DNA of 64,000 bases from Tubulanus polymorphus (GCF_964204645.1 NC_134033.1:3930231-3994230), one strand, 5' to 3'; numbered from the stretch's first letter, positions 12,951 to 53,145 are shown. Notes: generated by a model not told the origin, from the sequence alone. Made by a program: numbers and translations.

Positions 12951-15900
12951 CATTTGAGAACTAAAACTATGAGATGTACTTTAATTTGCTCTTCTATACG
13001 TGACTGGACATTGTGTAAAAGCTTTTGATTAAACTCAGAGGCCTATATGATATGCGTAATCTGGAAACAATTTATCGCTTTTACCGCTTATGCGCGAAGA
13101 AACGTTTTACATTGGAATGTCCAACACCAAGATTTGCGGTCCAAACACGCATATGTGAGAAAAGGTCAAGAACAGAAAATATACAAAGCTACCGAACTGC
13201 GGCGGATGGTAGCAGATGCTGAGCGAAAACAGTGCATCCTGCTGTCAGTTTGTGCAGTCGTTGTAGGTCAACGCGTTATCAGAATCATTCGCACCATAGG
13301 TTTTATCGAGTGAGCATATCCGTTTGGAGCTGAGCAGCAGAATTTACTTATTCTTCTATTCGAAGGTAAGATTTTATCTATACTTAGTTATAATGAACGG
13401 GTTTTAGTATCGATACTGATATAAGTCTAACAGACTTTTGAATGACCAAGTCCGTGTAAATGGGTTATCAATATCGTGCCTTCTTCAAACCCGTAGCCCG
13501 GATTTTGAAATGGGCGTTGTTTGAATTATAAAAAGGGCACTTCTGCGTGTTTTGTATCCCAGGAAAGCGAGCATCGTGTGCTTAAAAACAGAATTCTGTA
13601 GTTATTCCACAAACAATAAAAAAAAAAACAAATGCATTTCAGTATAACCATTTGAAATGTTAGAATGACATTTATTCACCGCTAATAGAAGTAACTCTGG
13701 ATGTTCAATAGTTCAAATTAAAATGTTTGCTAACTACATTCGTCTTGGGTTTTTTCCCGCGTATATTTTTGCAACAGCTGGTGAATTTGAATCTGTTGCT
13801 GAGTCGCTAGTAGGATGTGGCCTACACTGAACATCTCAAGTGGTGCCTCTGAACCCTTTTACATATTCGATAGCTCAGGCAGTAGTGTTTCGATTGATGC
13901 GCAAAAGCGATGATCAATTGACCTCAAACAAGTGTAATAAAGCGTGTAATAATTCGTAACAAGTTGGCTGAAAAAATTACCAAAATCACTAAGGGCATTT
14001 TCTATAAAGGGGCGTTCGTTCGAACGGACAACCCCCCCCCCTGGCTATGGGCTTGTTGTTAAAATCATCACTAGGCCTACTCCTAAACACACCCATGTAT
14101 TGTATTTTAACAACTGCTCTTCTTCAACAAAAACGACGAAATGAAATACAAATGTTTTTCCCGATAGCAAAGACATTGAAATAGGATTTCCAGAGGATGA
14201 ACCTTTTATATCTACTATTATATTTTTTCAGTATCCGAAAATAAAACGAACGTGAAGATGGATCGCAATATAAACGTCGAAGGACCGTGGGGTTTACGTT
14301 TCATCGGAAACGACGCATGGTTGGTTAATGACAACGATATCTCTGTACATATAAAAGACATAAAACAAGCCGGCTCGATTGGATGTGTGAAGGTATGTAA
14401 GTTCAAATTTCGCTTCTCTTACAGTGAACGTGAACAGAGCTCTATAACGCAACCTTTTTTCCACAGATTTCGACTTCGAATACCACAAAGCGCTACAAGC
14501 TGTCCCAGTTGATCACCGAAAACCTCCCCGAATGTTTAAAGCGGACAGTGAACTCCAGATCAGAATTTGTGAAGGCGTTTAATGAATTGTTATTAGAGGA
14601 TTCTCGTAAGTTACCTTAAGATTTTTTTGTATCTAGTAACATAAGCATGAAATGAGAGATTCTACAATGGGAAAAATGACAATAACCGAGATCTAGAAAT
14701 ATATTCAATAGATCTAAAAATCGCCTGAGTTTTCGACGATGTGATCTCATTATATAAAAGGGAACCTCGCTTTATTCGGACACAGTAATACTGGCAAACA
14801 TTTGTTTGATATAGAATAATAATTATGTTTATTTACATTGAGATGATTGGAAGGTTAGAAAAATATGCCAGAAAGTCGAAAAATGATCTCTTTTAGTTTT
14901 GGAAAAGTATCCACAATTTAGATAATAACAGAAAAATTTCATATTTGATTACGTAGATCAGTTTAGAATGTACACGTGTGTGTGTGTGTGTAAACCTAGC
15001 ATCACACACTCGACTTTTTGAAGAGAAATTGAGTTGTCTCAAATTTTCGATTTCTCAACTTCTGATAGAAAAATAAACAAAGTTGTGTCAAAATGCGCGC
15101 GAATATGCTGTATGTTGATTGGTTAGATTACTCTCGACTCCTCGACTTTGTTACGCCCGATTTTCCTCGACACAACTCTCGTCTCGACTAGTCGAGAGAA
15201 ATACTTCTATATTGGCTAGAGAAAAATCTAGCCAATCTGGCGCATTTTTAATAGTCTTCCTTTCTGGTAAGAGAAGGCAATATATTTCTACAATAAAAAG
15301 ACTAAACCTTTGATAAAAATCGTATCGAATCAACTTCAGTGACTCTGACATAGTTGATATAATGATACTCATTTCCTCTTTTAAAATTGATATCCGTAGT
15401 ACTTGATGACTGATTTCGTTTATCGACAAACATATTTTTGATTATGATTTCTTGTTCATCCATGTATGGGTCAATGCACTGCTGCATCTACGCTCAGCTG
15501 GTGTTGTGTGTGTGTGTGAACAAAAATTAAGACACAAATTTTATTTATTTTGCCAACCGGGTCAACAATAATTGAGAAATCGAGCTTCAAAAAGTTGTGT
15601 GGTCGAACCATCGTGTGCTTGCCGGCAGATACGCGTGTGACCTGAACCCGCTTCATCTGCCTCATGTTAGTGGAGATAATGTATTTATTCGTTTTAGAGT
15701 CCGTGATTTATCTTAGCGACTTTTTGCATATAGCTATCTGTTTGATATATCCAACGCCAATTTTGTCAGTCCAAAGAAATGCGGGAACTGCGATAAACAC
15801 GGAAAACATATCACCACTGCTTCAATGACTTATAACATTATACGGCATAGTCGCAGTCGTTTATTTTTAGGCTCACTGATAGTATCATACCGCCACCAGT

Positions 15901-18900
15901 GGCCTCCACCGGGATGGGTTCTTTGCTAGTGCACACAAAGATACACGTGCTACATAGTAACTACTAATAGCTAACATTATCAAAAAGGCGTGAAATGGCA
16001 TGGTTTACAAAGCTACAAATATATGATTAACATAAACAAAACGTTTAGATAAATAAGATACCACGTGTGGGACTGATTCTAGAAGTTTTGAGCCTTCCCT
16101 TGAGTCACTAAATTTGTATTTGATGAAATCAAAAATTAAAAGCTAACGAACTTTTCCAAAGCGCAAATTTTCTATTTTTAGTTTATCCAGTCTAGTGGTC
16201 AACACAGGCCACGTGTGACCTAAAACCTTCAGCCGTTATCATAACAGACGCTCATTAGAAACTCTCAAATATACTGATCACCTCTCTCGCCCTGTAACCC
16301 TCTCTCCAGGCGTGGTTCCAATGAGAGAGTGCAGGCCGGGGGTCCCCTTCTAGACATTATTATCAAGTTGCGCTGAAAATTTACGAGTAAACGAGAAATA
16401 TTGATACCAAAAGAAGTTTAAATTCATAAGTATTTCTAAAGAAAACTGTTAATTTTTGTCTATTGGTTTTTTTTCGGGGTCCCCTTTTTATCACGATATG
16501 CCCTATTCTTGGGGGGGGGGGGGGCATTCCTCACTGAATCAGAGCCAAGATCCGCCGTTGCCATCCGACGTTGGCGTCAAATTCCCAAGTAAAGGCTATT
16601 ATTACATCATTTTGTTAATCAATGATGTCTTGCTGTTTATCAAGTAATCAAACATTACTAAAGCGGATAACAGGCTCAGCGTAGCCTTTTATAGATGCAG
16701 CGTTTTAGTTACGATTCGCAATTATAGACGTGTAAATAGATACACGTTTTCACTCTAATCTCGGTTTAAGAAAATGCAATACACTAAGGTCGAAAAATAA
16801 ACCGCAACAACAAAATCCAATCCAACTACGCGGCAATAACTAACGTGAGATAATGTTTATATCGATTGTATATTCAACATGAGATTGATTTTAAATTTTT
16901 ACAGGTAATAAAAGTCCAATACGCCATGAAAAAAGTACTTCTGATGACACTTTTGAAACGAACGACATCTATACATTCAATGGTAAGGTTTCATTATTGA
17001 CACCCAGAAGAACTCTCCGAGTAAGCATTTAATGAAAACATGAAAGGGGTGGAATTTTTCAAGCTACTTATTATAAACATTTATAACAAGTAGTTTGCTG
17101 GATCCATGAATTTTGATTGCGAATTATTTGTCTATATTACATTGCAAAAGTACGCTCAGAATGCACGTCATTGCCTACAGTAGACTCCGCCTATTCTCTG
17201 TTCTAATTCTATCGAATACCGACTCAAGAGTTCGGGGAATTTTTCGTTAACAGTAGATGTTTTGAAATGTTACTTCGTACTGGATCGGCCATCACATTAC
17301 ATTTTGGCTCAAAGGGAAGGTAGCTGAGTTGATCCGTCACGTAATGAGTTTATCCCCCACGTTACTACATTATACTTCAATTTTTTGAGTTTATCCTTCA
17401 CGTGATGACCTAAACTTCTGTTTGGCGGGGATGGCCGCCCATACCCTATTGCTTTAATTTTCGCAAGGCCCTTTTTTAAAATGAATCCGCCCATAACATC
17501 AGCCCCGGGTTGTTCTATGTCGAAATAAATGCTGAAATTACATAGGTCAATAATCGCATGGAATTACATGCCGCGACTTGAATTATTATACAAATTATAA
17601 AAAATGTCATTATCAATATAATCATTGAAATAAATTCTTAATTTGAAATGTATTATTTCTATTTAGAACAAGATCCTTTCCATGGACTCCACTTAAACAC
17701 TGCCCTCGGTGATTCAACTAATGGTATGTATTGTTTAAGATATCATTATTCCGAGCTGTATTAGAGTGTAAAAATAACACCAATTTTGCCTTTGTGAAAT
17801 AAGTGAGGTCTCTTCCACACCTCCCCTGGTGATATGTTTGTTATTCTCCAAGAGTGATTCGAGTGTTTGAGTTCATTATATGACTTAGAATACAGTAGAA
17901 TGCTCTCTAGTAGTTGATTATACTTTCCGACCTTAAGTGGTGGTAGACATGTGTCCAACTTGAGTGACGTCAAATTGAGATGTGATAAGATATCCGAGTT
18001 GATCATATCTGAATTGAGTGAAGTGTTACATTTTTATCAAATTCCATTCTTGTTTTGTTCTATATTTTCGAGCGACTTTTCGAGATCATATCGATCGATA
18101 ATCTCCCTCTTTTTAAAACAAAGTGTTAATCATCCATCAATCAAACAGGAACGTATTTAATTCAATGTTACAACAACTCCGGACACTACGAGTTGCTATC
18201 AGAATTCATTGAGACTTAACAATTTACAAATCTCATCTCTTGTAGGTTGTGATGAAGTAAAATCCCTTGAACCATCGGAATTGTTAAAATGTCGTGATGG
18301 TAGGTCTTCATGTGTTACTTTCACTTAATTACTTTCGGGAAATAAAGAAATTCACAGACAAAAACAACATGCCATATAATTTGCTGAAAACATATTACGT
18401 CAATTTCCTCATTTCTGAAGTAATACAAAATTGGAAGAAAAAATTTGATTATCAAGTAAGAATCGAATTAGATTCAACATTAATGAGTTAAGTTATGGTG
18501 ACACCTAGAGAACTATAATTAGATATTTCCATTCGTGGTATATTTACAGAAATGCATGTACAACAAATTGAAAATACATGTACTGAAAACAGATCTTCAT
18601 CGGTTTGTTCAGGTAAGTCGACCAGATTACATCTTGCATTTCATAATCGCTTCGAACAGATTATTCAATTATATCAATTTAATTTATCCCCTTTCTTTCC
18701 TGTATAGATATGCTTCAAAAACAGGTCATACGCTTCAGACAAGGTGAGCTGATTTTCAAATCGTTTTCGTTATCAGTGTCTAATTTCCGATGCATCATGC
18801 ATCACCCTGGCTTTAATAGATAAGGCTAGCTACCATAAAGAAAATGAGACTATGGTCATCCCAAAAGAATCAGTCGTGCATAATGTTTACAATTACCCAT

Positions 18901-19017
18901 GGGTCACAGTTCAATCTGACAAATTTGTAAAACTTTCATATCGAGTTCTTAAACATCCAAAAAATGAAAAGAAACAGTGAAAAACATGTGAAATGATAAC
19001 TATTTTTCTTTCCGTAG

Positions 19018-19257
19018 GTACATACAAAATAGCGACCGAAAAGCTAAAAGCTCCGTCGTGGCCACTCCAGGTGCGATGTGTGGATCGGAAACACGTGGAC
19101 AGTTTGAAATCTGAGATGCTGGCACGCCCTGCATCAAACTTTATGTCCCTCGTAGGTCGTGCTACAGGGCCCATTATCTCTCCGTTAGAAAAAAATGTTA
19201 TCGAAATATTGGGTGGAAACCACACCAGAATCGCGCTACAGGAGCTTTTGATTGAAG
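19018..19257 (+). CDS. Exon 8 of the ParB-like gene, N-terminal half of the ParB/Srx-like domain
   Basis: tccgtag acceptor and gtgcgt donor. Encodes LQVRCVDRKHVDSLKSEM...IEILGGNHTRIALQEL, matching the ParB pattern (R...l..l..si ... hydrophobic strand-G-x-H-R/T-helix). Confidence 0.8.
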
Positions 19258-19432
19258 GTGCGTCACAGAATTGTACTACATTTGTTTAAAAGAACAAATG
19301 CAGCATTCCTAGGAACCAATATTGTCTAACTTCGTGTTGCATTACACGCGATTTGAAATTAAGTCATTCATTTACTTTAAAACAAGCCCGACATTAGCAT
19401 TGATCAATTAGAATTGATCCGAATCTTTGCAG

Positions 19433-19468
19433 GTGCTGATCCGAATCATTATGGTTCAGCGATGGTAC
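19433..19468 (+). CDS. 5' part of ParB-like exon 9, upstream of the LTR insertion
   Basis: ttgcag acceptor. Encodes (G)ADPNHYGSAMV and joins in frame to 34533 once the element and one GTAC are removed. Confidence 0.8.
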
Positions 19469-20729
19469 TGATACACCGGTCACAATCCTCTCCTTAATCG
19501 TTGAATATAAAAACGTAAAGATCGGTCCCTGGCGAGAGAACGTGTCCGTGCACAAACCCAAATAATTAAACTAAAATGCCGAAATTCTGATTGAATATAA
19601 TAATAATAAAATGGATTTTATTTACCTTGATAATAGTAATATCTCCAGTACACAGTCCAATTCCTAACTCCAAATTCCTATTGTACACTACTGTTGGTAA
19701 CCCGTCCTAATTCTGGTATTTCCACCCAAATCTCAAGTATCTTTAACGAGCGTCCCTGGTAAGTCTGCTTTCTCAAGACTGCGGGCCTCTTTTATGGAAA
19801 AGATCGGCATTCCTAGAATGCCGACTCTCCCGTTCGACTTTTGGCAAGGAGCAGCAACCTAGCTGTCATGACGGTTTTGGACATGTAGAATTAGCCTTAA
19901 TGATTCGCTAATCTAAAATTATTTGAGAAACTGATTTGCCAAAGTAACTTTTCTTTCCAACCCTCCTGTCATAACGCGCTTTGATTTACTCACTCCCTAC
20001 TCATCATCGTTGAGAGAGCAGCTATTCTCTACGAGTTACCAACAGACATGTACACCAACAGAAACCTTAGAGAGCTAGTATTGATATTTGCCACAATTAA
20101 ACTTCCATAAAACTTAAGCGATTATAAAGGTCTTGTCCTTAATTAACATCCAGGATACTTAATTTAGATATATTTTCAAAACTTAGTTTTCACCTAGATT
20201 ATGGAACAAACTCATCGTTTCTTTTTCCAATCAACAATAGTAAACTTTTGATTCAGAAATACAATGTAATTAATTATCAAATCTAAAATCATTCTATACT
20301 TATTATACCAATTTTCATTTATAATTTAACTAACTCTATAATACTACAGGATAAAGCAAAACAACCATGTCTCCCTATACTTCCGGTTCTTCCTTTTATA
20401 GAAAGTAGTCGGGAGTATCAAGAAGTAACAGCGAGATCCCTGCACAAACCACACTATCAAAGCACCTCATCGTTCCGACCCAACCAATTACGTCTATCCT
20501 TAAGTTTTTAAAAATAATTCTGAATGTTTGCCAGATATCGACGCACAAGAACCGAGGAAGAATTATTTTTACCCCTGGCTGATTTGTTGTCAGCGCTGGT
20601 AGATCAAAGCATCAAACAACAACTTGCACACATCGTTTGCTGTCTGATACCCATAAAGAAACCACCAACGTAAACAAAAACCATCATTACAAACATTTTT
20701 TAGTTACTACGGAATCTTGCTGCGGATCA
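19469..20729 (-). repeat. 3' LTR (1261 bp)
   Basis: Starts tgatacaccggt and ends gcggatca. Matches 33261-34528 apart from a 4-bp indel, a 3-bp indel and one substitution that I could see. Minus-strand AATAAA near 19617-19622. Confidence 0.97.
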
Positions 20730-20742
20730 TCACTCCCTATCC
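20730..20742 (-). promoter_or_regulatory. Polypurine tract
   Basis: Minus strand reads GGATAGGGAGTGA immediately before the 3' LTR. Confidence 0.85.
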
Positions 20743-22215
20743 AGTTTAAATTTCGTCCCGAAATTTTGAATTTAACCCAACTCGTGAATATCCCGCTGAT
20801 ACCTCTAGAACAAATCCTGAAAAAGAACATTAGTAAACAATTCATTATAACGAGTAACGAGTTTGACACTACAACGCATATTAAAGTTCATGATATAGTA
20901 TATCATAAAACCGCATTTAAAGTTCCGGATACCCAATCGGAAAAAAGTTCATTCGAGACCGCTGTCCCCGCACACTAAACACTCGAAAGTTAAGCACAAA
21001 ACAGTTCACAGTTTGAGTTTAGAATTTACCGCGAAGTGACGCAACAGCTACCAGACACAACAAGGTACGTCATGGACGGACGAATGACGTCATCCACCGC
21101 AGTTCCTCGAAGCGCGTACTGCTACGTTGATAGTACGGCAAAACACATTTATGTTCAGCTGAATACTTGCTCGCTATTCATAGACGCTATAGTACTACGG
21201 TTACTATATCGGAGTCTTTTCTCCACAGTTAATATAGAAACGGAACAGTAATGTATTCGCATCTTACGGCTTGAGCGAACAACATTCCATCGAATGTTAA
21301 TGTAACTACACGGGAGCCATCTTGAACACACTCGGCTTTACTCCGCTAAAATGTCTACGGAAATTATCACTTTTCTTCACATTTCGTATCGCATTGGCCA
21401 GGTGTCTTTGTCCACCCTTCATCACTTAAGTTTGTGAGTATATAGCAAGTCTTCGAGAGTGACAAACACCACTAACAATGGCAAGAATCGCATGACGAAT
21501 CATCGAGCATGATTCCATCCCGTTAAAACCAACGCCCAAAGTTCGCTGTTGTATGTCGTATATTCGCTCCGTTTCTTCGTTATTTGACGAATCGGCAAAT
21601 TAATATCACTCATCTCGACCAGAGCATACCAGTTGTTGGTTTATCATACTATCAATTGCGTCGAATAGAGTCTCAGGATACCTCCCAACAAGTCCCCATC
21701 TCCATATGGTCACTATCAGGGGGGTACCCGTCGACATCTATTGCGGTTGACAGAAGAAGGCATTCTTCCATCAAAGTGCTGTCATATCTCGACGGTCCCA
21801 TCTTCACACATCCGATAAGGGTACCTTACAATCAAATAAAAACACAGAGATTATATAAAAATTTCATAACTCTTCCTTTTCTATCTGACAATTAACAAGT
21901 TCTACTCAGACTACGGATAATAAACACTGGAGATTATTGATATTACGGCGATAGGCCAATAACACGACAGTTAAACCTATAATCTATGTTTATTTTATGG
22001 TTGTCTTTATCTCACATAACTTAAAGGCTTAATAGTACTTATTCCTAATATATTTGTGTTTCATCATCATATAATAACAACTTTCCGACAATTTTGCAGG
22101 ACATATGCATCCTGACCTTATTACTGATTAAATTATACTTACGTCAAATCCAATGAGGGCATTCGAGCACCCTTATTCAGAATAGCTACTCTTAAATAGC
22201 TTTCAAATACTGCCC

Positions 22216-24849: not shown

Positions 24850-24895
24850 CCTGAAAAATAGGGATAGCAAGAATCAGTAATCTCGAAACCACGTA

Positions 24896-27800: not shown

Positions 27801-29992
27801 AACATCTGTTTGACATGCGTGTCAATAACTTCTTGCATGGCCGGAGAGGCTCTATAAGGCCTTTTCCGAATTGGGGCCGCGTCCCCTGTGTCAATGACGT
27901 GTTTGACTAAGTCAGTTTTACCAAGTTCGTCCGGTGTTCGTGCAAAAATGTCCCGATACGATCGTATTAGTTCAAGAAGTTCCGCTTTCTGTGATACAGA
28001 AAGGTCCGAGTCTGACATATCTATTTCCGGTATCCCAATGTCAGCAGATGTCTGAGGGTAGTCCACATGTGTGACAGACACCTCTGGAGGTCGGGTCAGC
28101 TGTCCCGAATTCCCTTCATTCTTCAGGGATTGGTCAAGTGACCACCCATCTGTCCATAAGTGGCCAAGACACATATCCTCATAGAGGGTGACATGTCGTG
28201 ATGTGGGATTCATGACCCGAACCGGAATGCCTGATTGCGTAACGTCGACAACTGACCTTGCACTCATAAGATCATGTGCCCTTAATTGATTTGCCGGCTC
28301 AAAGACTGCCACCGATGCTTGTGTCCTGTCAATCGAGTACTTTCCGTCTATGATGGCCTCACACGAGGGGGGAATGACAGTCATTCGCGTAACCTTGACG
28401 GACGAAGATTTGCCCAAATTGACAGTATTGTTGAAGTAAATTGCATCGGCCCCTGGTAACAAAAGGGCCTTTCTTGCATAATCAATAACTGCCTGGTTTT
28501 GTTCCAAGAAATCAGCTCCAAGAATTACATCGGACGTGATACCGTCTACCACGTACATAGAGTGCGTAATTTCCAAATTGCCTAACACAAAATCCACACA
28601 AATAACTCCTCTCAGGTCAAATTTAGTTCCATCTACCCCACGGGCAGATTGGAATTGACCGACCTGCAAAGGGCCATTTGATATCTGAGGATGAGTCGTA
28701 AAATAATCGTTCGATAATACAGATATTTCGGCGCCCGTGTCGATCAAAATACTTAACGGTGTCCCCGAATGGCTACCTGTCACTCGGTTAGCGACAGTTG
28801 CCATGATCGACGGGGAATAAACCTCTTGTTCAATAGCATTATTCTGACTAGAAAGAGACCATATGTCGTTGGTTGGCGTGTTACCTAACGTCGTCGTAAT
28901 AGGTGGAAGTTGTTCCTGATAGTGAATAGTAGGTTGAAACTCGGAGTTCGAATCTCCTATTCCAACATTGTCGTTGGTTGGCATAATCGGTTCAGACGTG
29001 GGGACAACCTGACCTCTGTCCTGTGCGTTGGACATTTCATTACTGATTGGTTGATGAAAACCGCTGGTATTCGAGGTGACAGGACGATCCCGTTCTTTTT
29101 CGAATAACTGACAACAATTTTTTTTTGTTGACACCTGATTTGATACATTTGATACGACAGTCTCCGTATCATGATGATCATTACGACATTCCGACCGTGA
29201 ACTTTTATTACTTAAATCAACTGACACTAGGTCACATTGTACCGCTGATTCGGAAGTTACCGGGTACTTATATTGATCAAGAGTGCGTTCGTGACAATTC
29301 AATTGAGACTTCTTATCTCTAAAAAGGTCATCTTCTGCCGAATCCGTCGGACCATTAACCCCTCTAGAGTGTGACCTATCAACACTAATATTGTCACCCG
29401 AGCACGCCATATCTGCACGTACCTCCTGCAATTCAACCGGATCGCTAAATGTGACCCTCCTGTGTCTCTTTACAGGCTCTCTAGTAACCGACAACTGGGA
29501 ATTATTCATCCAGCTGTCCTCAAAATTGGATCCCCGATCCATATAAAAATTTCCATCAAACGACAACTGGGTATTGTCCCTCCAGCTGTCCCCAAAGTTA
29601 CGATCTTGAATGTCATAAACGTCATCGGCACCCCATGAATGAGTGTGATAATCAATAAACTTATTTAAATGTATAGGTTCATTTTCATCTAAGTAATCTA
29701 CATTACAGTTCCCCTCAGGTTCAAAATAAAGAGAAAATGAGTCAGCTAGCATGTTGCCCTGATCAAATGACATGTCGAATATATCATCCCTATCGTCCTC
29801 AAAATAATCATCAACATCATTAAAAATATAATCGTCGATTACAGGACTGTCATCGTCATATCTATGATATGAATATGAGTCGTCCCACCAAAAATCACTC
29901 CTTATCGCCGAATCGGGCGAGGGCTCTGTTGACCATTCATTGCGCGACCCCACCCTTGTCGGTCCATAGGATGAGGTCCCCGGTCGTTTCCC
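24896..29992 (-). CDS. pol: Pol polyprotein: long acidic N-terminal region, aspartic protease, RT, RNase H, integrase, chromodomain; in-frame TAA at 26218-26216
   Basis: LIDTGAEISVL (protease); WRFCVDYRGLN, LPFGL and YLDD (RT); LYTDASD and ITDH (RNase H); HDSMTGGHLG...CKDC plus the DDE core (integrase); YYVERV...YLIKWVGYDDNENTFEP (chromodomain). ORFs 29953-26216 and 26206-24896 share a frame across RY*WHGMY. Confidence 0.95.
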
Positions 29993-31061
29993 TGACTAAA
30001 TGTTCGATTAGCCCCTTGGGAACCACGTCCAATATTCTGTGACCGAAACTGGCCCCGACCATAGTTCTGGGGACGGCGATTATCACGCTGAAATGCGTCC
30101 CGGTTTGGCGAGACCCGCGACCTTTGTTGGTCGTAACGCCAAGTTGGACAATTCCTGGCGTAATGACCGGGGGCGTGACATTGGTAGCACACCACCTGCC
30201 CATCTTGCGACCGTTGTGATGGACGGTTCTCGCTATAATAAGTACCCCTATCATCCCGCTGAGTTCGGGTAGACTTTTGTGTGTCCATGATTTGGCGGAA
30301 CATGTCCCGTAGCTCGTCATGACATCCCCTATCGCCTTATTTGGTTCGGTCCCAATTTGCGATATCTTGGGAGACGACAGGGCCTTTCGTTGTTCGATAT
30401 GTTCAGCCATTATGGCTGCCTCCCATGCATCCCTAAAAGTTGTTGGACGTTGCGACAACAGATAGACTGAAATGTCAGGCCGAGAGTTATTGATCAATAA
30501 CATCTTTTTCTGGTGGTCCGAGAACTTCAAACTTGAGGCCACCCGATCAATTTCCTCCGCAAACCTATCGACCGGTTGCGTTTCCCCCTGTCGCATTGTC
30601 GTCAAGGCCGACTCCTTGACCAAGGCCCACGAGGTAGGGCTAAATTGCGTGCAAAATGCATGGACAATATGCTCCCAGGGAGTGGTAATTTTTGTGCCGG
30701 TCGAATCGGTCGCCTGATCAATGCGGAGGTCATTGAATAGAACTAGGGCTGGGCCAGCCAAAAACCAATACAACTGTTTCTTTTTGGCATTTTCGTCCCA
30801 GCCTCTCAGATCGGCCAAACGATTGAACCCTCTGAACCAATCAGAGACGCACTGACTGTCTCGTCCTGTAAATTTCGGGAGCATGGAAAAGTTCATAAAC
30901 GCGGTGGCCGTGTCCACCTGTTCGCGTAAGCCCGAGAGGGCCTCTAAAACCGTGCCATTGCTAATTGGGGGGTGACCCTGTGGGCTCCCTCCTGTAGAGG
31001 TTTGCCCCTGCAAGCCACCCGCATCGTCCGACCCGTATGTTGTCCCGCTTCTAGTTGCCAT
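29902..31061 (-). CDS. gag: Gag (capsid plus CCHC nucleocapsid) with an apparent 1-nt deletion near 30318
   Basis: Retrotransposon gag-like motifs (LPKFTG, WDENAKK, MRQGETQPVDRF) lie in ORF 31061-29937. The zinc knuckle CYQCHAPGHYARNC and an RG-rich tail lie in ORF 30303-29902. Restoring one G (ATG GAC GAG CTA CGG) fuses them into ~386 aa. Confidence 0.88.
29947..29992 (-). promoter_or_regulatory. -1 programmed ribosomal frameshift signal (gag-pol)
   Basis: Slippery heptamer G GGA AAC (29992-29986) in the gag frame, a 7-nt spacer, then an 11-bp stem GACCTCATCCT/AGGGTGGGGTC. The -1 frame is open into pol (GKRPGTSSYGPTRVGSRNEW). Confidence 0.8.
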
Positions 31062-31119
31062 TTTCTAAACCAGAGTAATCAAATTATTATTATTCCTACG
31101 ATGATGCTACTTTTAAATT

Positions 31120-31917
31120 CTAAACCTGATCCTGGCGATCAGCCCAACAAAGTAGGTTATCCCAAGTACGGGCAACCTCCTCCACCGTAATCTCTTCCCT
31201 TAAAAATGACGAAAGAATGTCATCAATCTCCTCAAAAATCCACGAAGTGCAAGGGCCAAGGGCAGACTGACTTTCAGAAAATCGGCCTATACCCCCGCTG
31301 GGCGACAGATCCAACGATTGGTCACCCGCAGACGCACCTAAGGACAGGTCTACTGGAAAACTTTGGACAGGTGCGCCCAAATGTCCGCCCAACAGTTGGC
31401 CCGCTACAGGCGTAACAATTGCTAATGGTCTGTTTAAAGATCGAGTTGCAGACAGGTCTGCCGGTTGCTCTGAGTCGAACTGATCAATCCCTATAGGTGA
31501 ACCAGGCGGCACCGAACAACAGCATGAAAAGCTTGAGTCGCTGGAACCGGTTGATCCAGCTGATGACGGCGGCCGTGTGAAAGGTTCACCAGTCCGTATC
31601 GAGCTATTTCGGTTCGAATCCGTACCCGAAGGACTTAGGGGCGGAGAAGGGGTCACTGAAGACGAGCAAGTACAATTTACCTGGTCCTGAAAAACCGCTA
31701 ACGTTGGGCACTCACAATACAAACAACTATCCAAAAAGTCAAAGTCTGAAGACTGAGAAGTTGGAGTCCCAGCACTGGTCCCAGGGGAAGCAGTTATGAT
31801 GGTAGGTGTTGCGGGTGCTAAACTCACAGTAGTGAGACACCTTTTTCGGGGTAGTGTACTCCAATAACCAGTGCTACGACGTTTGTTTGTGCACCTTACC
31901 GGAATCGACCCCGACAT
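31120..31917 (-). CDS. Accessory ORF3 of the retroelement (265 aa, Ser/Pro-rich, three PxDLS-like motifs, acidic C-terminal helix)
   Basis: Intact ATG-initiated ORF on the element sense strand, bounded by AT-rich spacers, directly upstream of gag. Contains PADLS, PVDLS and SLDLS. Confidence 0.6.
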   Translation of the reverse strand: MSGSIPVRCTNKRRSTGYWSTLPRKRCLTTVSLAPATPTIITASPGTSAGTPTSQSSDFDFLDSCLYCECPTLAVFQDQVNCTCSSSVTPSPPLSPSGTDSNRNSSIRTGEPFTRPPSSAGSTGSSDSSFSCCCSVPPGSPIGIDQFDSEQPADLSATRSLNRPLAIVTPVAGQLLGGHLGAPVQSFPVDLSLGASAGDQSLDLSPSGGIGRFSESQSALGPCTSWIFEEIDDILSSFLREEITVEEVARTWDNLLCWADRQDQV

Positions 31918-32009
31918 TAACGTACTAACTTACAAATAATAATCACCAAAAAGAAAATTATACAATTCGAGTTTAATTGCTTATTATAATTTCAATAAAT
32001 AACCCCAAT

Positions 32010-32450
32010 TTAATCAAAGTAGCTGTATATTCGCGACTTATCAGCCAACAATACGTTATGGTCAGGGATAGCACATAAACTGAAATCCCCCTGATCCCAG
32101 GTAGACGTATAAGTATTAAGCCCGCTGGGTGGAGGGTTCGAATCCCTCAGAGTCTGTCCGACCGCTCCGTCGTTATTGGTACCCTTTGTGCTGAGTGGGT
32201 TTGAATCCCACAGTGGCTGTTCAACAGCTCTGTCGTTGGTAATACCCTTGATGCTAAGTGGGTTCGAATCCCACAGTGGCTGTTCAGCAGCTCTGTTGTT
32301 AGTGGTCCCCTTGGTGCTAAGTGGGTTCGAATCCCACAGTGGCTCCCTTAAATGAGCTGGTACCTCCCAACTAGACTTGGGGACTGGGGCAAGCGTGTGC
32401 GTCTTGGACACCGTTGCCCCACAGTAACCACGCCTCAACCCAGCTGACAT
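32010..32450 (-). CDS. Accessory ORF2 (146 aa, 4 x 21-aa L[WR]DSNP repeats)
   Basis: Intact ORF with a 63-bp in-frame repeat. Shares WEVPAHLREPLWDSNP with FEIPVEFREPLWDLNP of ORF1. Confidence 0.55.
   Translation of the reverse strand: MSAGLRRGYCGATVSKTHTLAPVPKSSWEVPAHLREPLWDSNPLSTKGTTNNRAAEQPLWDSNPLSIKGITNDRAVEQPLWDSNPLSTKGTNNDGAVGQTLRDSNPPPSGLNTYTSTWDQGDFSLCAIPDHNVLLADKSRIYSYFD
32132..32337 (+). repeat. Four tRNA T-arm/B-box palindromes at exact 63-bp spacing
   Basis: gagggttcgaatccctc 32132, gtgggtttgaatcccac 32195, gtgggttcgaatcccac 32258 and 32321. Confidence 0.92.
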
Positions 32451-32544
32451 GTATCAATCACAAACAACACCAAATATTTTTCACAAATAACAATCAGGCA
32501 ATCATAAAGTTAACAATTGACTGGTACTATAAGACCCCCTTAGT

Positions 32545-33201
32545 CTATGCTGGACAAAGGAAATAGCCGTCAGCGTCTTTATCACCAAAGAACAACTCGG
32601 CCGGGTTTGCAAAATCACGAACAAAATGTGCCCAAAATGGGTCGAATTTCTCGGGCACTTTCACTGGCTTTACCCTTTGCCGGCGTTCGAGAGGGTTTGA
32701 ATCCCTCGAGGTGATCGAAGCTTCGCGCTGAGTGTCGGTCGGGTTAGAATCCCGTAAAGGCTCAGCAGATACGGCCAAAGTCAGCAGTGGGTTCGAATCC
32801 CACAACGGCTCCCGATACTCTTCCGGGATTTCAAATGGCTGTGCACCTCTGGGGTTCGAATCCCGCAGTGTCTCAACAGGGTCGACCGGAGTTGGCAGTG
32901 GGTTCAAATCCCACAATGGTTCCCGAAACTCGACCGGAATTTCAAATGGCTGTGCACCTCTGGGGTTCGAATCCCGCAGTGTCTCAACAGGGTCGACCGG
33001 AGTTGGCAGTGGGTTCAAATCCCACAATGGTTCCCGAAACTCGACCGGAATTTCAAACGGTTTGGTATTAGGTGGGTTCGACCCCCACAATTTCTTTTTG
33101 TATGTTGAGTTGGTTGTAGTGCGGCGCTTCTTAGAGAATGCGTTCCTCGCACCACAGTGGGAGCATACGAAGATATGAACCATTTGAACAAAACTAAACA
33201 A
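32545..33201 (-). CDS. Accessory ORF1 (218 aa, or 212 aa from the ATG at 33183; N-terminal CxxC, basic patch, 8 DSNP-type repeats)
   Basis: First ORF after the PBS. Contains CSHC and KKRR; repeat periods of 48 and 63 bp are multiples of three. Confidence 0.55.
   Translation of the reverse strand: MFSFVQMVHIFVCSHCGARNAFSKKRRTTTNSTYKKKLWGSNPPNTKPFEIPVEFREPLWDLNPLPTPVDPVETLRDSNPRGAQPFEIPVEFREPLWDLNPLPTPVDPVETLRDSNPRGAQPFEIPEEYREPLWDSNPLLTLAVSAEPLRDSNPTDTQREASITSRDSNPLERRQRVKPVKVPEKFDPFWAHFVRDFANPAELFFGDKDADGYFLCPA
32691..33088 (+). repeat. Eight tRNA T-arm/B-box palindromes with 48/63-bp spacing (111-bp higher-order repeat)
   Basis: Motif starts at 32691, 32739, 32787, 32850, 32898, 32961, 33009 and 33072; core GGGTTCRAATCCC. 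Confidence 0.92.
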
Positions 33202-33240
33202 TTAATGTAAAAAGTTTATCGTAAACCGAAGATTATTGAT

Positions 33241-33259
33241 ATCCCGGGTTTCGGCACCA
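33241..33259 (-). promoter_or_regulatory. Primer-binding site for tRNA-Phe(GAA)
   Basis: Minus strand TGGTGCCGAAACCCGGGAT, 1 nt inside the 5' LTR boundary. Complementary to the 3' end of eukaryotic tRNA-Phe (...ATCCCGGGTTTCGGCACCA). Confidence 0.93.
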
Positions 33260-33260
33260 A

Positions 33261-34528
33261 TGATACACCGGTCACAATCCTCTCCTTAATCGTTGAATAT
33301 AAAAACGTAAAGATCGGTCCCTGGCGAGAGAACGTGTCCGTGCACAAACCCAAATAATTAAACTAAAATGCCGAAATTCTGATTGAATATAATAATAATA
33401 AAATGGATTTTATTTACCTTGATAATAGTAATATCTCCAGATAGTACACAGTCCAATTCCTAACTCCAAATTCCTATTGTACACTACTGTTGGTAACCCG
33501 TCCTAATTCTGGTATTTCCACCCAAATCTCAAGTATCTTTAACGAGCGTCCCTGGTAAGTCTGCTTTCTCAAGACTGCGGGCCTCTTTTATGGAAAAGAT
33601 CGGCATTCCTAGAATGCCGACTCTCCCGTTCGACTTTTGGCAAGGAGCAGCAACCTAGCTGTCATGACGGTTTTGGACATGTAGAATTAGCCTTAATGAT
33701 TCGCTAATCTAAAATTATTTGAGAAACTGATTTGCCAAAGTAACTTTTCTTTCCAACCCTCCTGTCATAACGCGCTTTGATTTACTCACTCCCTACTCAT
33801 CATCGTTGAGAGAGCAGCTATTCTCTACGAGTTACCAACAGACATGTACACCAACAGAAACCTTAGAGAGCTAGTATTGATATTTGCCACAATTAAACTT
33901 CCATAAAACTTAAGCGATTATAAAGGTCTTGTCCTTAATTAACATCCAGGATACTTAATTTAGATATATTTTCAAAACTTAGTTTTCACCTAGATTATGG
34001 AACAAACTCATCGTTTCTTTTTCCAATCAACAATAGTAAACTTTTGATTCAGAAATACAATGTAATTAATTATCAAATCTAAAATCATTCTATACTTATT
34101 ATACCAATTTTCATTTATAATTTAACTAACTCTATAATACTACAGGATAAAGCAAAACAACCATGTCTCCCTATACTTCCGGTTCTTCCTTTTATAGAAA
34201 GTAGTCGGGAGTATCAAGAAGTAACAGCGAGATCCCTGCACAAACCACACTATCAAAGCACCTCATCGTTCCGACCCAACCAATTTATACGTCTATCCTT
34301 AAGTTTTTAAAAATAATTCTGAATGTTTGCCAGATATCGACGCACAAGAACCGAGGAAGAATTATTTTTACCCCTGGCTGATTTATTGTCAGCGCTGGTA
34401 GATCAAAGCATCAAACAACAACTTGCACACATCGTTTGCTGTCTGATACCCATAAAGAAACCACCAACGTAAACAAAAACCATCATTACAAACATTTTTT
34501 AGTTACTACGGAATCTTGCTGCGGATCA
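33261..34528 (-). repeat. 5' LTR (1268 bp)
   Basis: Direct repeat of 19469-20729, adjacent to the PBS and followed by the GTAC TSD. Confidence 0.97.
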
Positions 34529-34532
34529 GTAC

Positions 34533-34759
34533 ACACCTATTCGTCGGACCTCCCGGACGACATGGCGAGGATGCTAGCTATTCAACACAACGCCGTGCAC
34601 GAGAAATACCTGCCAGCTACATTCGCGGATCAGGTGTTAACCTGTCGGCGATGCCTGTATCACCACGCTGGCAGGACTGACTTGGAGGGTGACACTCCGA
34701 ACGATCCCGAAATCGTTAAACGATGGAAAAAAGGGCTCGAAACAGTGTATCAGTTGAAT
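34533..34759 (+). CDS. 3' part of ParB-like exon 9
   Basis: HTYSSDLPDDMARMLAIQHNAVHEKYLPATFADQVLTCRRCL resembles the ParB segment l.d.ea..lal.eN...l...e. Donor gtgagt at 34760. Confidence 0.8.
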
Positions 34760-35501
34760 GTGAGTTGTTTTCTCTTTGCTGTTGTTCTTCCAGTTTCAGA
34801 AATGAAATATCTGCACATAAATGTTGATGATTATTTCAGAGAAAAGCACTAAACAACAAAATGAATATCGCGATATTTTTCGCCCAATTGGACAAACCAA
34901 CATTTCACGCTTGGACTAATCTAAACCAGAACTGGGCGAATGTTAAAAACAATAAAGGACCGCTTACTCGACATGTGGCACGGAAATTTTTCCGTGTCAA
35001 ATCAGGCAACAAGTTACGGGCTGTGTTCGTCGATATGGCAAGGGGGGCGATGGATTTATCCACTGCCTTGGAAATTTGCGCGTAAGTAAAAGAATGATAT
35101 TCGGTGAATAAAATTGTCACTCGAAATCATTTTATGATTTTCCTTAATGCACGTGCAAAAATTGATGTTTTTCTACTCTCTTAATCCGATATCGATAGGA
35201 ACGAAATATTGGGAAAAAACAATATGTCAGTAGATGAGACGGAGGAGGAAAGTGTTAATGAAAATCAGGTAATTATGACAAAAATAACGTTACCTTAACA
35301 TGCAACACCGAGTGACCGTCCTATTCATATCTTTCATGCGTCAAATTCGATTAATTAAATCTAGTGTTTGTTTGCTCTAGAACATCAATGAAAACCAACA
35401 AAAAGATGATGAAACGACACCACCATCCAATCATCGAGCTTTGACTGAAAAGGTAATTGTCGCATATTCCAACAGTTTTTCCATTTAATACCCACTGTTA
35501 G

Positions 35502-35671
35502 GTCGTTGATTATGATAACGTGATAATATTTCTAATTATATTAAAAGCTAAAAGCTTCGTCTTGGCCACACCAGGTGCGATGTGTGGATCGGAAACACGT
35601 GGACAGTTTGAAATCTGAGATGCTGGCACGCCGTCGTTGATTATGATAACGTGATAATATTTCTAATTATA
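35502..35671 (+). repeat. 90-bp copy of ParB exon 8 (source 19039-19128) flanked by a 39-bp direct duplication
   Basis: 35543-35632 matches 19039-19128 with 3 mismatches. gtcgttgattatgataacgtgataatatttctaattata occurs at 35502-35540 and 35633-35671. Confidence 0.93.
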
Positions 35672-36296
35672 GGTCACGAACACAGAAAGAAATGCTGTAT
35701 TAAATGAAAATCTTGTCAAGATAAAGGTATAGAATTTTTAGAGTCGGAAATGTTATAATTTTAGACTAAAATTATATAATTTAGCATCAGCCTATTAGAG
35801 CCTGTATATCTATTATGTAGTTAAGGAGATTTCATTTCTTTATATTCCAGGAGAAAAACAACGAACTAAGATCGGCGGTCAGTGATCTGAAGGCAAAACT
35901 CAAACAACAGAAGGTACGTTTATCCCGAGTTGATATTCCGTTAAATAGAATATACGATTATGCTGTTAATGTGTGCATTCGTCGTTCAATTGTAGGATGT
36001 GAATTCAGAGACGCTGTTAAAACTCAAGAACAGTGACCATACAATATCAGTATTGGAGGTAGGCATTTAAACCGAATGTGTAGGCTTAGTTATCTGATAT
36101 ATTTGAACTACATGGAACTAAAAACAATCATTTCATTTTTATTCAGAAAGAAAAGGAGTGCCTCGAGGCTAAAATAAACGAACTACAAACCCAGCTGCAG
36201 GTAAATTATTCATCTTTTTGTTATATTCACAGTACCCGGTATAGCATGGTTTATGTGCGAAACAGAATACGCTTTAGTTTAACGCAAAATATCCAG

Positions 36297-36769
36297 GCGG
36301 CGCTACGTACCGGTTTGAGTCGCAGACAGAGCCGATAGAATATGCCCCACTTGTAATACTTTAGTTGACGAATCCCATTTTCTGTTTGACTGTACCTTAC
36401 TTAACAAACAACGCAAAAACTTTTTGAATTTGAACACCTTAAATACCCTTGATATTCTGAAAAACCCAACGGTCAACTTAGCTGAATTCATTAAGACCGG
36501 CTTAGATGTATATAGATCCCTCCAATAGTATATATAGTATTGTAAATAGTTGATGTATATAATAGTATATATAGTATTGTAAATAGTTGATGTATATATA
36601 TATATATATTTCGTTACGTTTTCATTCTCTAAATTTTAATCACTTCAGTGTTGTTTTGTAAATATTTGTATATACATGTGTAATAGTTTTCCTCCATATA
36701 CCATGGAAATGGTTGGAGTGTAAATAAATCGTAATCGTAATCGTAATCGTAATCGTAATCGTAATCGTA
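36297..36769 (+). mobile_element. 5'-truncated non-LTR retrotransposon (LINE) 3' end with (AATCGT)n tail
   Basis: Frame RYVPV*VADRADRICPTCNTLVDESHFLFDC...* matches the C-terminal CCHC motif of LINE ORF2. It is followed by a 3' UTR, AATAAA at 36722-36727 and a hexamer repeat tail. Confidence 0.75.
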
Positions 36770-36770
36770 G

Positions 36771-36802
36771 TCGCTTCTCGGCCTATTGGCTAAGATCAAA
36801 GT
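36771..36802 (+). pseudogene. 5' fragment (~32 nt) of U2 snRNA
   Basis: tcgcttctcggcctattggctaagatcaaagt matches the conserved U2 5' end; similarity stops before the branch-point recognition GTAGTA. Confidence 0.88.
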
Positions 36803-37546
36803 CTCTGTACTGAATATCTTCCAGTGGTTTATTGAACCGCTACAAATTAACCCAATGAAGAATAATACACCGGTACACGCAATTCAGTGTTAATTATGAA
36901 TATTTATTTTTAGAAGCGACCAGCAGTAACCACAGGCGCTACCTATGAAAGGCGACCGAAAAGACAGAAGGTAAGCGATTTCAAATAATGAAATTTCCGT
37001 CGTCAAAGGGTTTCAATCGTGTTGTTGTAGTGTTAGTGAAAACCGATCATTGGCAATGTGTTCTTGGTCTCTTCAATTCAGGTTGGGCAGGACGTAAATA
37101 AGACGTTATCGACAAACTACAGTAAGTAACATTGTTGCTATAAAATATGTCTACTTATCAGTCGATAGAATTAAGATAAGGATATTAAAATCGTTTCTAT
37201 TTTCCCGCTTGTTTTAGCTGTTCCTGGCTTGGATATTAACGTCGTTTGCCCAGACGTTGGTGAAAATCTTCTCGTCAAACCGGGTATGTCATCGTGTTAA
37301 CACTAGAGTGAATACATTGGATACAATACGCTCATTCTACGAAAGCGTCCTGCGCACACATAACAACAAATCCAGCTTTATCCCGATTCGAAGTCACTTT
37401 TAACTGCTAACTTTTGACAAACTAGGGATAAACCTCGTAATGTTTTGTCCGCAGAGCGTTTCGACTGCGGTTTTTTACTCATTTAGAATGAAAACATAAA
37501 CGAATGTGTTCTACACTAAAACCCGTTTATGTATGTTATATTACAG

Positions 37547-37845
37547 GCGAGGGAGCTAAGAATATCCAGGTCGTCGACAGAGACGTAGTTCTCGTTGATT
37601 GGGAAAATTACGGAATTTACGTGGCCGCGGTATCCAAAAAACAATTAATTAGTTGTAGAAGGCCGGTCAGGAAATTATCAGGATCTATCGTACTCGATGA
37701 TGACTCGTTATCAAATTTAGACGTTCACGATCGGCAGGAACTCAAACAAGTCCTTTTCGTGGTTCCCGGCGCCAGTGTCGTTGACGGAAAGAAAATAAAC
37801 GGAGTCAATAGTTCGTGGATAGTGGCTGCCCTCACTTATTACTAG
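37547..37845 (+). CDS. Terminal exon of the ParB-like gene (possible Tudor/SH3-like barrel)
   Basis: ttacag acceptor in phase 1. DRDVVLVDWENYGIYVAAV resembles the Tudor start motif (Gd.Vla.W..g..Y.A.V). Ends in TAG at 37845. Confidence 0.7.
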
Positions 37846-40211: not shown

Positions 40212-41039
40212 TTATATTTTGTAAACTTGCACAAGTAACTGCGACTTAAACCAAGATCTACTTGAAATGAATTCAATACGTGCTTTATTAGTTTTAGTAT
40301 AAAACGATGAAGGTGGATGTCCGGTTTGTTCTCGTATAAGAGCTATAGGTTCACTGGTGCTGTTCCATCCGTCGTACATTTGAGGACGAGTTTTCATTGG
40401 ATCCTCACCTGGTTTTAATCTGAAATCTATCTGTATAAACGTTAAATTCATTGCAAACCCGTCTGGCATCTCGATCCATTCTAACAACAATTTACATCGC
40501 CGGATAGAAATCATAAATTCATAACCTGTTTGAGTTGGTAATTCTTTTACCGCACGCTGTGAGCATTTATGTACGATTTTCAAGCGACTCTGTTCTTCAA
40601 AACGATATATGATATAAACCCGACTACCTCGCGCTCCATCGACGTTACTCCTAAACAACAACGCAATCAAATCGTTCCTGCGGATATCTAGTTGTTTTCT
40701 TCCGGTAGCGCAGAGTTTGTTGTCGGACTCACCGACGAGAAGGTAGTTTTCGTTACAGAATATCGACGGCTCGATGTCGTAGTAAACTTGAACGAGAAAA
40801 CTTCCCGGTAAAGAGCTGTTGACGAACCAACGACATTCAACACCGCGCACTAACGACGGATAGTTCGGTGAAACGATGTAACCAGACGTAGAATCGACGG
40901 AGTATTGAGTGTTGTTACAAGATGAACTGACTGTAACAGACGCGGCTTCCTCGATAGAGTTTGCGCGATCAGCCCGCATAAATATACAGTCTCCGCAAGC
41001 GATCAGTAAAACTACGAACAACGCTTTCATTCGCTGCAT
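40212..41039 (-). pseudogene. Truncated 5' copy (signal peptide, CUB region) of the GRL101-like receptor gene
   Basis: About 40215-41835 is homologous to about 50580-52215. Homology ends abruptly at about 40214, where the junction creates a TAA. Confidence 0.85.
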
Positions 41040-53073: not shown

Positions 53074-53145
53074 TCCCATATGGTCTAGTGGTTAGGATTC
53101 CTGGCTTTCACCCACGCGGCCCGGGTTCGATTCCCGGTGTGGGAA
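53074..53145 (+). tRNA. tRNA-Glu(TTC), with one C:C mismatch in the anticodon stem
   Basis: TCCCATA...TGTGGGA acceptor stem, A box TGGTCTAGTGG, anticodon loop CTTTCAC, B box GGTTCGATTCC, T5 terminator at 53152-53156. Confidence 0.92.

Follow-up and report, generated by a model that had tools for sequence, protein, structure and literature searches.

An intron-rich invertebrate gene with a predicted ParB/Srx-fold core, split by a young LTR retroelement in Tubulanus polymorphus

The window analysed here, a 64,000-nucleotide stretch of the Tubulanus polymorphus genome (GCF_964204645.1 NC_134033.1:3930231-3994230), contains a region that was shown, by exon structure and homology, to be a genuine 20-exon invertebrate animal gene. 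Overall, the best explanation (probability roughly 0.6) is that it is a genuine member of a ParB-fold gene family, that its exon 9 has been split by a young retroelement, and that the intact protein would be an NTP-binding switch acting on DNA or chromatin. Exon-by-exon searches found 14 weak relatives, and these comparisons showed that the gene belongs to an undescribed animal family with members in amphioxus, the bivalve Solemya, the annelid Owenia and environmental animal fragments.

The exon chain was rebuilt from the sequence and runs on the plus strand from 14258 to 37845 with GT-AG introns. All internal exon boundaries are of the AG...GT type, no exon contains a stop in its phase, and the phases are compatible from the ATG at 14258 to the TAG at 37843-37845; together with the homology of separate exons and the introns shared with relatives (see below), this upheld an earlier reading of the region as an intron-rich animal gene. 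Exon 1 (14258-14392; ATG and 45 codons, with a phase-0 end on V-K) aligns with the N-termini of homologues, and exon 2 (14467-14605), the second half of the N-terminal domain, is colinear with them, best with Owenia. Exons 3 to 6 (16905-16982, 17667-17723, 18246-18299 and 18550-18612) encode a linker, each running from phase 1 to phase 1, and were placed by splice signals and phase, as the homologue linker is of low complexity and gives no homology support. The final G of exon 7 (18708-18743) completes the codon of a family-invariant Gly, at a junction (...RFRQ/G) that resembles that of amphioxus (...RHFV/G). Exon 8 (19018-19257), whose product is 36-47% identical to 14 database proteins, supplies the first half of the ParB-like domain, in which GGNHTR lies. 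Exon 9 lies in two pieces, a 5' part (19433-19468; ADPNHYGSAMV; acceptor cag at 19430-19432) truncated by the retroelement and a 3' part (34533-34759) encoding the second half of the ParB-like domain with LPDD...QHN. These are followed by exon 10 (34840-35081; helical domain), exons 11 and 12 (35199-35268 and 35381-35452; acidic linker), exons 13 to 16 (35673-35726, 35851-35913, 35996-36058 and 36147-36200; coiled-coil region), exon 17 (36914-36970; a basic, bipartite NLS-like patch), exons 18 and 19 (37082-37121 and 37218-37283), which are required to pass from phase 0 to phase 1 ahead of the last exon, and exon 20 (37547-37845; a C-terminal module of about 98 aa and the TAG), all on the plus strand. 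Homology backs exons 1, 2, 7, 8, 9 and 10; for exons 3-6 and 11-19 the basis is splice signals, phase and the fact that homologue genes are split likewise.

The window exons were translated one by one, and the protein length is a count over them: the chain amounts to 2142 nt (714 codons) only when exon 9 is assembled from 19433-19468 and 34533-34759, so that a 15,060-bp LTR retroelement drops out together with one of the two copies of its 4-bp target duplication. The first-pass annotation had spliced 20 exons to a stop-free protein of 714 aa. The chain, the phases and the codon count stood, but only with the retroelement taken out of exon 9; the exon 9 of that annotation started exactly at the LTR end, and normal splicing of this allele does not give the 714-aa protein.

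The full homologues are uncharacterised proteins of 650-1000 aa with a common order of parts. A small domain at the N-terminus is joined by a low-complexity linker to the ParB/Srx-fold domain (about 270 aa), which passes directly into a helical domain; an acidic linker then leads to a coiled coil, and the basic NLS-like patch and a small C-terminal module come last. The acidic linker, the short coiled-coil exons (54, 63, 63 and 54 nt) and the basic bipartite patch described earlier for the window gene were all present, and they recur in the homologues, where the coiled-coil exons are also small and give weak matches to coiled-coil families, comparable basic patches lie at the same relative place and the C-terminus is likewise encoded by a single terminal exon. 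The proposed Tudor-like nature of the last exon found no support in these searches. Exon 20 had no Pfam match, and profile comparison showed no similarity to the barrel at the C-terminus of the amphioxus and Solemya homologues; its sole relative was the C-terminus of the Owenia protein, matched weakly but colinearly (E 1.0). The amphioxus-type module is itself a predicted beta barrel (pLDDT 83.5) that matches Sm, BAH, Agenet and KOW only weakly (E 0.03-0.09).

The ParB/Srx fold of the core was confirmed at the level of structure prediction. The fold was modelled on the homologue P0003, which is 30-45% identical to the window's exons; the AF2 model of its residues 115-389 reached a pLDDT of 93.3 and a pTM of 0.88, and exons 8, 9 and 10 of the window are colinear with this segment and retain all of the invariant residues. 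When this core was compared to the PDB with Foldseek, the top match was Noc (7ol9, E 3.5e-5), followed by 7nfu, and further matches were ParB (7bnk, 6t1f, 6sdk), pNOB8 ParB-N (5k5d) and KorB (8qa9), then Srx (1xw3), SbnI and PadC. The top matches had a probability of 1.0 and alignments of about 265 columns, and the alignments to ParB, Noc and KorB (TM 0.42-0.55) took in the helical domain. Searches of BFVD returned phage ParB/Spo0J-like proteins (TM up to 0.55) as well as phage sulfur-modification and DndB-like proteins, and all significant matches in both databases were ParB-fold proteins. The fold assigned to the core in the first-pass annotation is therefore confirmed by model and structure matches, whereas profile searches gave nothing: no Pfam or NCBIfam family reached threshold in exon-by-exon searches, nor did PADLOC report anything; Pfam ParBc (PF02195) and related profiles had no match in the window exons or 15 family members at E values up to 10; and the helical domain had no HTH profile match.

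The residues invariant in the family are an Arg that follows strand 1, E-x-x-G-G-N-H-[TS]-R-x-A-L at the turn from strand 3 to the helix, and H-N at the start of the next helix, and all of them, GGNH[TS]R and H-N included, are present in the window exons. By motif order and predicted secondary structure, rather than by superposition or a ligand-bound model, they map to the positions of boxes I, II and III of ParB, Noc and KorB, with which the family shares the fold, the order of elements and a predicted dimeric state, but no profile-level sequence similarity. Within these positions the residues differ. At box II the family has G-G-N-H-[TS]-R-x-A where the general motif is GxxRxxA and ParB has GERRxRA, and setting the Gly and Ala in register puts the Arg one residue later. 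At box III, H-N stands in place of ParB E-N-x-x-R: only the Asn, assigned by position, is kept, it is preceded by His (Asp in the metagenomic relative L012), and no conserved Arg follows. The C-terminal part also departs from canonical ParB CTPases, as it consists of the coiled coil, in place of the ParB C-terminal dimerisation domain, and the small module. No ParA-binding peptide [LFI]G[KR]G[LFI] occurred in 10 homologues or in any window exon. Unlike bacterial and phage ParB, Noc and KorB, the family is eukaryotic, and its genes are rich in introns and code for an NLS-like patch.

Since the invariant residues occupy, in sequence, the three positions lining the nucleotide pocket of ParB, the intact protein would be expected to act as an NTP-binding switch. 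By analogy with ParB we infer binding of both nucleotide and DNA: contact with DNA would fall to the helical domain, the coiled coil may provide the dimerisation that ParB takes from its C-terminal domain, and the basic patch may mediate nuclear entry. The most likely mode would be a nucleotide-dependent engagement of two N-domains on DNA or chromatin. To our knowledge, ParB-CTPase switches have so far been confined to bacteria, archaea and phages. With its ParB N-domain, helical domain, coiled coil and nuclear-type basic patch together, the family offers a concrete protein for asking whether NTP-gated DNA clamping exists in eukaryotic nuclei. A broader proposal, which we regard as tentative and on balance doubtful, is that bilaterians ancestrally possessed such a nuclear ParB-type switch (ParB N-domain, DNA-binding helical domain and coiled-coil dimer) that was loaded on DNA or chromatin in an NTP-dependent manner, shared an origin with ParB-DNA-methyltransferase fusions and was later lost in most lineages, including vertebrates. 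If true, this would be the first ParB-like NTPase associated with DNA in eukaryotes, the enzyme sulfiredoxin aside. A 2025 survey of the fold named sulfiredoxin as its main eukaryotic member and searched eukaryotes with the Pfam ParBc model (PMC12704722), which does not detect this animal family.

The ParB-fold domain might instead be enzymatic, in the manner of sulfiredoxin, SerK or SbnI: an ATP-dependent phosphotransferase whose substrate is a protein or small molecule and which has nothing to do with DNA. The list of fold matches includes both sulfiredoxin and SbnI, eukaryotic members of the fold are usually sulfiredoxins (PMC12704722), and the G-G-x-H-R-like turn common to both is closer to Srx GGCHR than to GERRxRA. 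We nevertheless consider this unlikely, as the best and longest fold matches were ParB, Noc and KorB, including their DNA-binding helical domain, and as a link to nucleic acid is indicated by the coiled coil, by the basic patch and by the relative that is fused to a DNA methyltransferase. Moreover, every family member has Asn in place of the catalytic Cys of the GGCHR turn, and sulfiredoxin is a single domain of about 110 aa whereas the family proteins have 650-1000 aa with helical, coiled-coil and C-terminal modules, in agreement with the earlier view that the protein is distinct from sulfiredoxin.

The protein could also be a leftover or partner of a DNA-modification system, with a core that targets or regulates a DNA methyltransferase, or senses modified DNA like the DndB/DGQHR proteins, rather than a clamp. 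Fusions of ParB-fold domains with N6_N4 methyltransferases in phages and prophages, and varied use of NTPs, have been documented (PMC12704722). In L012 the GGNHTR core of the family (hhalign 97.7%) is followed by N6_N4_Mtase (PF01555; E 3e-11, 44 bits against a cut-off of 26.7), and a second relative, L013, matched the N6_N4_Mtase family weakly; the fused relative is a lead on the origin of the family. DndB has a ParB-like fold, and DGQHR resembles GGNH[TS]R. Further points in favour are the sulfur-modification and DndB-like proteins in the BFVD list, a sub-threshold DndB match (PF14072; 21.8 bits against a cut-off of 29.1) in one of 15 members and the weak likeness of the amphioxus-type barrel to the BAH domains of DNMT1, MET1 and ZMET2. 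Against this, PF01555 was absent from the window exons and from all full-length animal homologues, which carry no methyltransferase domain, and the BAH-like matches were not significant (E 0.03-0.09); this reading, too, seems improbable. The family differs from DndB in that its motif is not DGQHR and that 14 of the 15 members had no PF14072 match. We know of no dnd-type partners in animals.

The insert in exon 9 (19469-34528, minus strand, 15,060 bp) is, by its sequence, a very young LTR retroelement, Ty3/Gypsy-like with an env-like ORF. Its LTRs (19469-20729 and 33261-34528) have TG...CA ends and are near-identical, differing by one substitution and two small indels, and the target-site duplication GTAC lies at 19465-19468 on the left and at 34529-34532 on the right. 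A site complementary to a tRNA 3' end adjoins 33261 as a candidate primer site, and the minus strand encodes gag (31061-29937), PR-RT-RNaseH (29953-26216), integrase with a chromodomain (26206-24896) and a Baculo_F-like env ORF (24870-22216). In all of these features it agrees with Ty3/Gypsy elements that carry a chromodomain integrase and env, from which it differs by a long leader with tandem repeats, extra ORFs (31120-33201) and a single in-frame stop (26216-26218) within the integrase zinc-binding domain. A reading of the element as an intron was rejected: it lies within a coding exon, it is bordered by the GTAC duplication, and its removal is not a splice because its ends are TG...CA, not GT...AG.

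Read as it stands, exon 9 meets a stop 10 codons into the LTR, shortly past the GGNHTR helix, so this genome copy is most likely a recently inactivated allele, possibly polymorphic, and the element provides an example of recent gene knockout by insertion into an exon. We think it quite improbable that the allele still functions because the element leaves as part of a 15-kb intron through a cryptic AG at 34528-34529, formed by the LTR end and the duplicated G. This AG is in frame with the exon 8 donor and would give 2109 nt, or 703 codons, a protein lacking 11 residues of a variable loop, and the remaining exons are all intact. However, the native acceptor (19430-19432) has stayed intact, at a distance of only 175 nt from the donor, and splicing to it leads to the stop in the LTR. 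The spacing from GGNH[TS]R to H-N also argues against it: it is 39 residues with 19433-19468 counted and 28 without, and the family range of 33-42 is satisfied only with that piece included.

Three intron positions, with their phases, are common to the window gene and its relatives. The intron after exon 1 has the same place and phase in Owenia and Solemya, a phase-1 intron interrupts the same invariant Gly codon (the end of exon 7) in amphioxus and Solemya, and a phase-0 intron precedes R/K-K-x-L-N-N (exon 10) in the window gene, amphioxus, Solemya and Owenia. Such shared introns argue for an old host gene and against mobile-element cargo. The earlier suggestion that the gene is mobile-element cargo or a recent domestication is hence very improbable: the distribution is patchy, amphioxus has several paralogues, two Solemya loci encode an identical protein and prokaryotic ParB-fold genes are often carried by mobile elements (PMC12704722), but the introns are common to a cephalochordate, a bivalve, an annelid and this genome, the homologue genes span 13-25 kb with many introns, the Solemya loci represent a segmental or haplotype duplicate of >35 kb with no bounded element, and neither 185,579 prokaryotic genomes nor IMG/VR yielded a relative in motif scans.

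Six peptides quoted in the first-pass annotation were all located on the plus strand at the places given for them. One of them, QVRCVDRK..., is present twice, at 19068 and, as a 97% copy, at 35572. The second occurrence belongs to an oddity within intron 12 (35502-35671, plus strand), where 90 nt of exon 8 (19039-19128) recur at 35543-35632 with 97% identity, and this copy is flanked by a perfect 39-nt direct repeat.

The exon chain was rebuilt from the sequence and checked by script, giving 20 exons from an ATG at 14258 to a TAG at 37843-37845, with AG...GT at every internal exon boundary, each exon stop-free in its own phase and all phases compatible. The six peptides quoted in the first-pass annotation were all recovered where it had placed them on the + strand, and the gene is, as described there, mostly invisible in the ORF track, since ORFs of at least 50 aa cover only exons 8 (19018-19257), 9 (19433-19468 and 34533-34759) and 20 (37547-37845). 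The exons were translated one by one, each separately; exons 3-6 and 11-19 are placed by splice signals and phase and by homologue genes with the same kind of splitting. A direct splice of exon 2 to exon 8 is in phase, but it puts an Arg at a position where the family has an invariant Gly, and exons 3-7 were therefore preferred. The total of 714 codons holds for the empty-site form of exon 9 (the exon without a retroelement and one GTAC copy) but not for the allele as it stands, so that the 714-residue product is that of the uninterrupted gene form.

Exon 9 carries a young 15,060-bp LTR retroelement (19469-34528, − strand). Its two direct repeats (1261 and 1268 nt; 19469-20729 and 33261-34528), which start with TG, end with CA and are flanked by GTAC at 19465-19468 and 34529-34532, are told apart by a single substitution and two small indels. 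Between them the − strand encodes gag, then protease, reverse transcriptase and RNase H, integrase with a chromodomain, and a Baculo_F-like env ORF; the 5' LTR is adjoined by a tRNA-3'-end-complementary site. The retroelement interrupts a coding exon rather than an intron. The acceptor (cag, 19430-19432) is intact, and the exon that it opens at 19433 is phase-compatible with the exon 8 donor (19257/19258), reads ADPNHYGSAMV and runs on across the empty site as HTYSSDLPDD. Between the Arg of the family motif GGNH[TS]R and the His of the following H-N, 12 relatives have 33-42 residues, and the window has 39 with the 19433-19468 piece and 28 without it. A plain intronic insertion was rejected on account of this acceptor, the continuity of frame over the empty site and the family spacing. 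The final LTR base and the opening base of the duplication together make an AG that happens to be in frame, and its use would give 703 codons. As the sequence stands, exon 9 enters the LTR and meets a stop after 10 codons.

Within the retroelement, the pol frame contains a single in-frame stop (26216-26218) in the integrase zinc-binding domain, and the Pfam H2C2 match is divided between two ORFs even though the LTRs hardly differ. The leader between the 5' LTR and gag (31120-33201 region, − strand) carries an extra ORF of 265 aa belonging to no family and two tandem-repeat ORFs (63-nt units at 32134-32344 and 111-nt units at 32741-33073, − strand); on the + strand these repeats include GGTTCGAATCC, a tRNA T-arm sequence.

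Scans of single exons and family members against Pfam, NCBIfam and PADLOC found no family, the Pfam and NCBIfam result including exons 8, 9 and 20, and a word-index protein search with exon 8 returned nothing, which justified an exhaustive search. Word-index searches with the core of P0003, a homologue, returned amphioxus paralogues only, and those with the full-length alignment only itself and one unrelated coiled coil, while PDB sequence searches with exon 8 and the family profile gave chance matches only. The exhaustive protein search found 14 proteins (E 7e-9 to 7e-4; none better). Three amphioxus species, Solemya velum and Owenia fusiformis supply the full-length relatives, which are 650-1000 aa long and either unnamed or annotated as "uncharacterized"; the remainder are ORF fragments from environmental or raw assemblies. 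Window and homologues share a layout of N-terminal domain, low-complexity linker, core, helical region, acidic stretch, coiled coil, basic patch and C-terminal module; the homologue coiled coils match coiled-coil families weakly, and the homologue genes span 13-25 kb.

Three introns are common to the window and its homologues: one after about 45 residues, on V-K in phase 0 (shared with Owenia and Solemya), one in the invariant Gly codon just before the core in phase 1 (amphioxus and Solemya), and one before R/K-K-x-L-N-N in phase 0 (amphioxus, Solemya and Owenia). In every case the C-terminus is a single last exon, which together with the shared introns supports the splice model. The first-pass annotation had considered a mobile-element-borne gene; the sharing of introns in position and phase argues instead for a gene inherited since early bilaterians and often lost. 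Solemya velum encodes one and the same 714-aa protein twice, 25 Mb apart on a single scaffold (L002 and L003); the blocks are 98-99.9% identical over more than 35 kb, differ by a 2.2-kb intronic indel and represent a recent segmental duplication or else an uncollapsed haplotype.

The fold of the core was assessed on P0003, which is 30-45% identical to the window's exons, using a 15-sequence core alignment for an AlphaFold model of residues 115-389 (pLDDT 93.3, pTM 0.88). All significant Foldseek matches in the PDB were ParB-fold proteins, namely Noc (7ol9, E 3.5e-5; 7ng0; 7nfu), pNOB8 ParB-N (5k5d), ParB (7bnk, 6t1f, 6sdk) and KorB (8qa9), with sulfiredoxin, PadC and SbnI ranked after ParB, Noc and KorB; the ParB/Srx fold proposed from the sequence, for which the absence of such a match would have been damaging, is thus borne out through this homologue. 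Against ParB, Noc and KorB the alignments cover about 265 columns and so include the helical domain that follows the N-domain, and a search of BFVD returned phage ParB/Spo0J-like proteins with TM up to 0.55. The protein would act most like the N-domain and DNA-binding-domain part of ParB, Noc and KorB. Its family lies outside theirs by sequence and by motifs and lacks the ParA-binding peptide. It is likewise distinct from sulfiredoxin, as had been proposed, because it lacks the Cys and has several domains.

Invariant or near-invariant residues are few in the family alignment: L-x-x-P and an Arg after strand 1, E-x-x-G-G-N-H-[TS]-R-x-A-L where strand 3 turns into a helix, and H-N at the start of the next helix. 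All of them are kept in the window's exons. In ParB, boxes I, II and III line the nucleotide pocket, and by order and secondary structure the conserved residues map, as a predicted positional correspondence, to the places of these boxes. Because of this placement, the intact protein is predicted to be an NTP-binding switch. However, the family Arg in box II is shifted by one residue relative to GxxRxxA and the box III Glu is replaced by His, so that NTP binding and hydrolysis are considered putative. Mutation of the Arg of ParB box II abolishes binding, and nucleotide specificity is not predictable from sequence (PMC12704722).

The amphioxus/Solemya-type C-terminus is predicted to form a small beta barrel (pLDDT 83.5), with weak matches only to Sm/LSm, BAH (DNMT1, MET1, ORC1, BAHCC1), Agenet and KOW (E 0.03-0.09). 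An hhalign comparison found no similarity between this type and the window/Owenia type. The description of the last exon as Tudor-like is therefore unproven for this gene, as exon 20 resembles only the Owenia C-terminus, and that weakly (E 1.0).

Scanned for the motif, 185,579 prokaryotic species (one genome each) and the viral contigs of IMG/VR yielded no relative; a scan of metagenome contigs gave 12 loci. One of these, L012 (1675-4944), is an intronless ORF of 1090 codons on a contig of 28% G+C, with an acidic/Ser-rich N-terminus, the same GGNHTR ParB-like core as the family (hhalign 97.7%, E 1.6e-12), a domain of the N6_N4 DNA methyltransferase family (44 bits, above cut-off) and a C-terminal Cys-rich zinc finger; a second contig locus, L013, matches the N6_N4 methyltransferase family weakly. 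L012, a relative of the animal family, may come from a protist or a giant virus. Fusions of a ParB fold with an N6_N4 methyltransferase are common in phages and prophages (PMC12704722), and a shared origin of such fusions and the animal family is a lead, not a result. A literature search found no paper on the gene's family; a 2025 survey searched eukaryotes with PF02195 at the gathering threshold (PMC12704722), which misses the window's family.

Outside the retroelement the G+C content is 33-39%, and the adjoining genes are animal genes, among them LDLa-LRR-7TM receptors and ORFs whose CUB match is weak and stays below the family cut-off. The gene's closest relatives come from amphioxus, a bivalve and an annelid, and the contig was not taken to be human. 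They form a duplicated receptor gene cluster on the − strand (40212-51416 and 62964-63977), which comprises a single-exon ORF of 1077 aa with six LDLa, LRR and a rhodopsin-type 7TM domain (45178-48411), another 7TM copy where the window ends, and an ORF present twice (40212-41048 and 50160-51416) that has a signal-peptide-like start and the sub-threshold CUB match. A tRNA-Glu (TTC) gene lies on the + strand at 53074-53146. Upstream of the gene, two 92-codon ORFs without a family match (1165-1443 and 6033-6311), 4868 nt apart, differ by one residue, indicating a tandem duplication.

Within intron 12 (35502-35671), 90 nt from inside exon 8 (19039-19128) recur as a copy with three mismatches; 'tt' comes just before the copy, and a perfect direct repeat of 39 nt (35502-35540 and 35633-35671) lies on either side of it. 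This looks like a templated insertion with target duplication, the template of which may be a paralogue or another allele since the copy is mismatched while its flanks are perfect. Intron 16 (36319-36770) contains a 69-codon open stretch with a C-x2-C...H-x4-C pattern and no Pfam match, which looks like a non-LTR retrotransposon ORF's 3' end; AT-rich repeats and a (CGTAAT)n microsatellite come after it.
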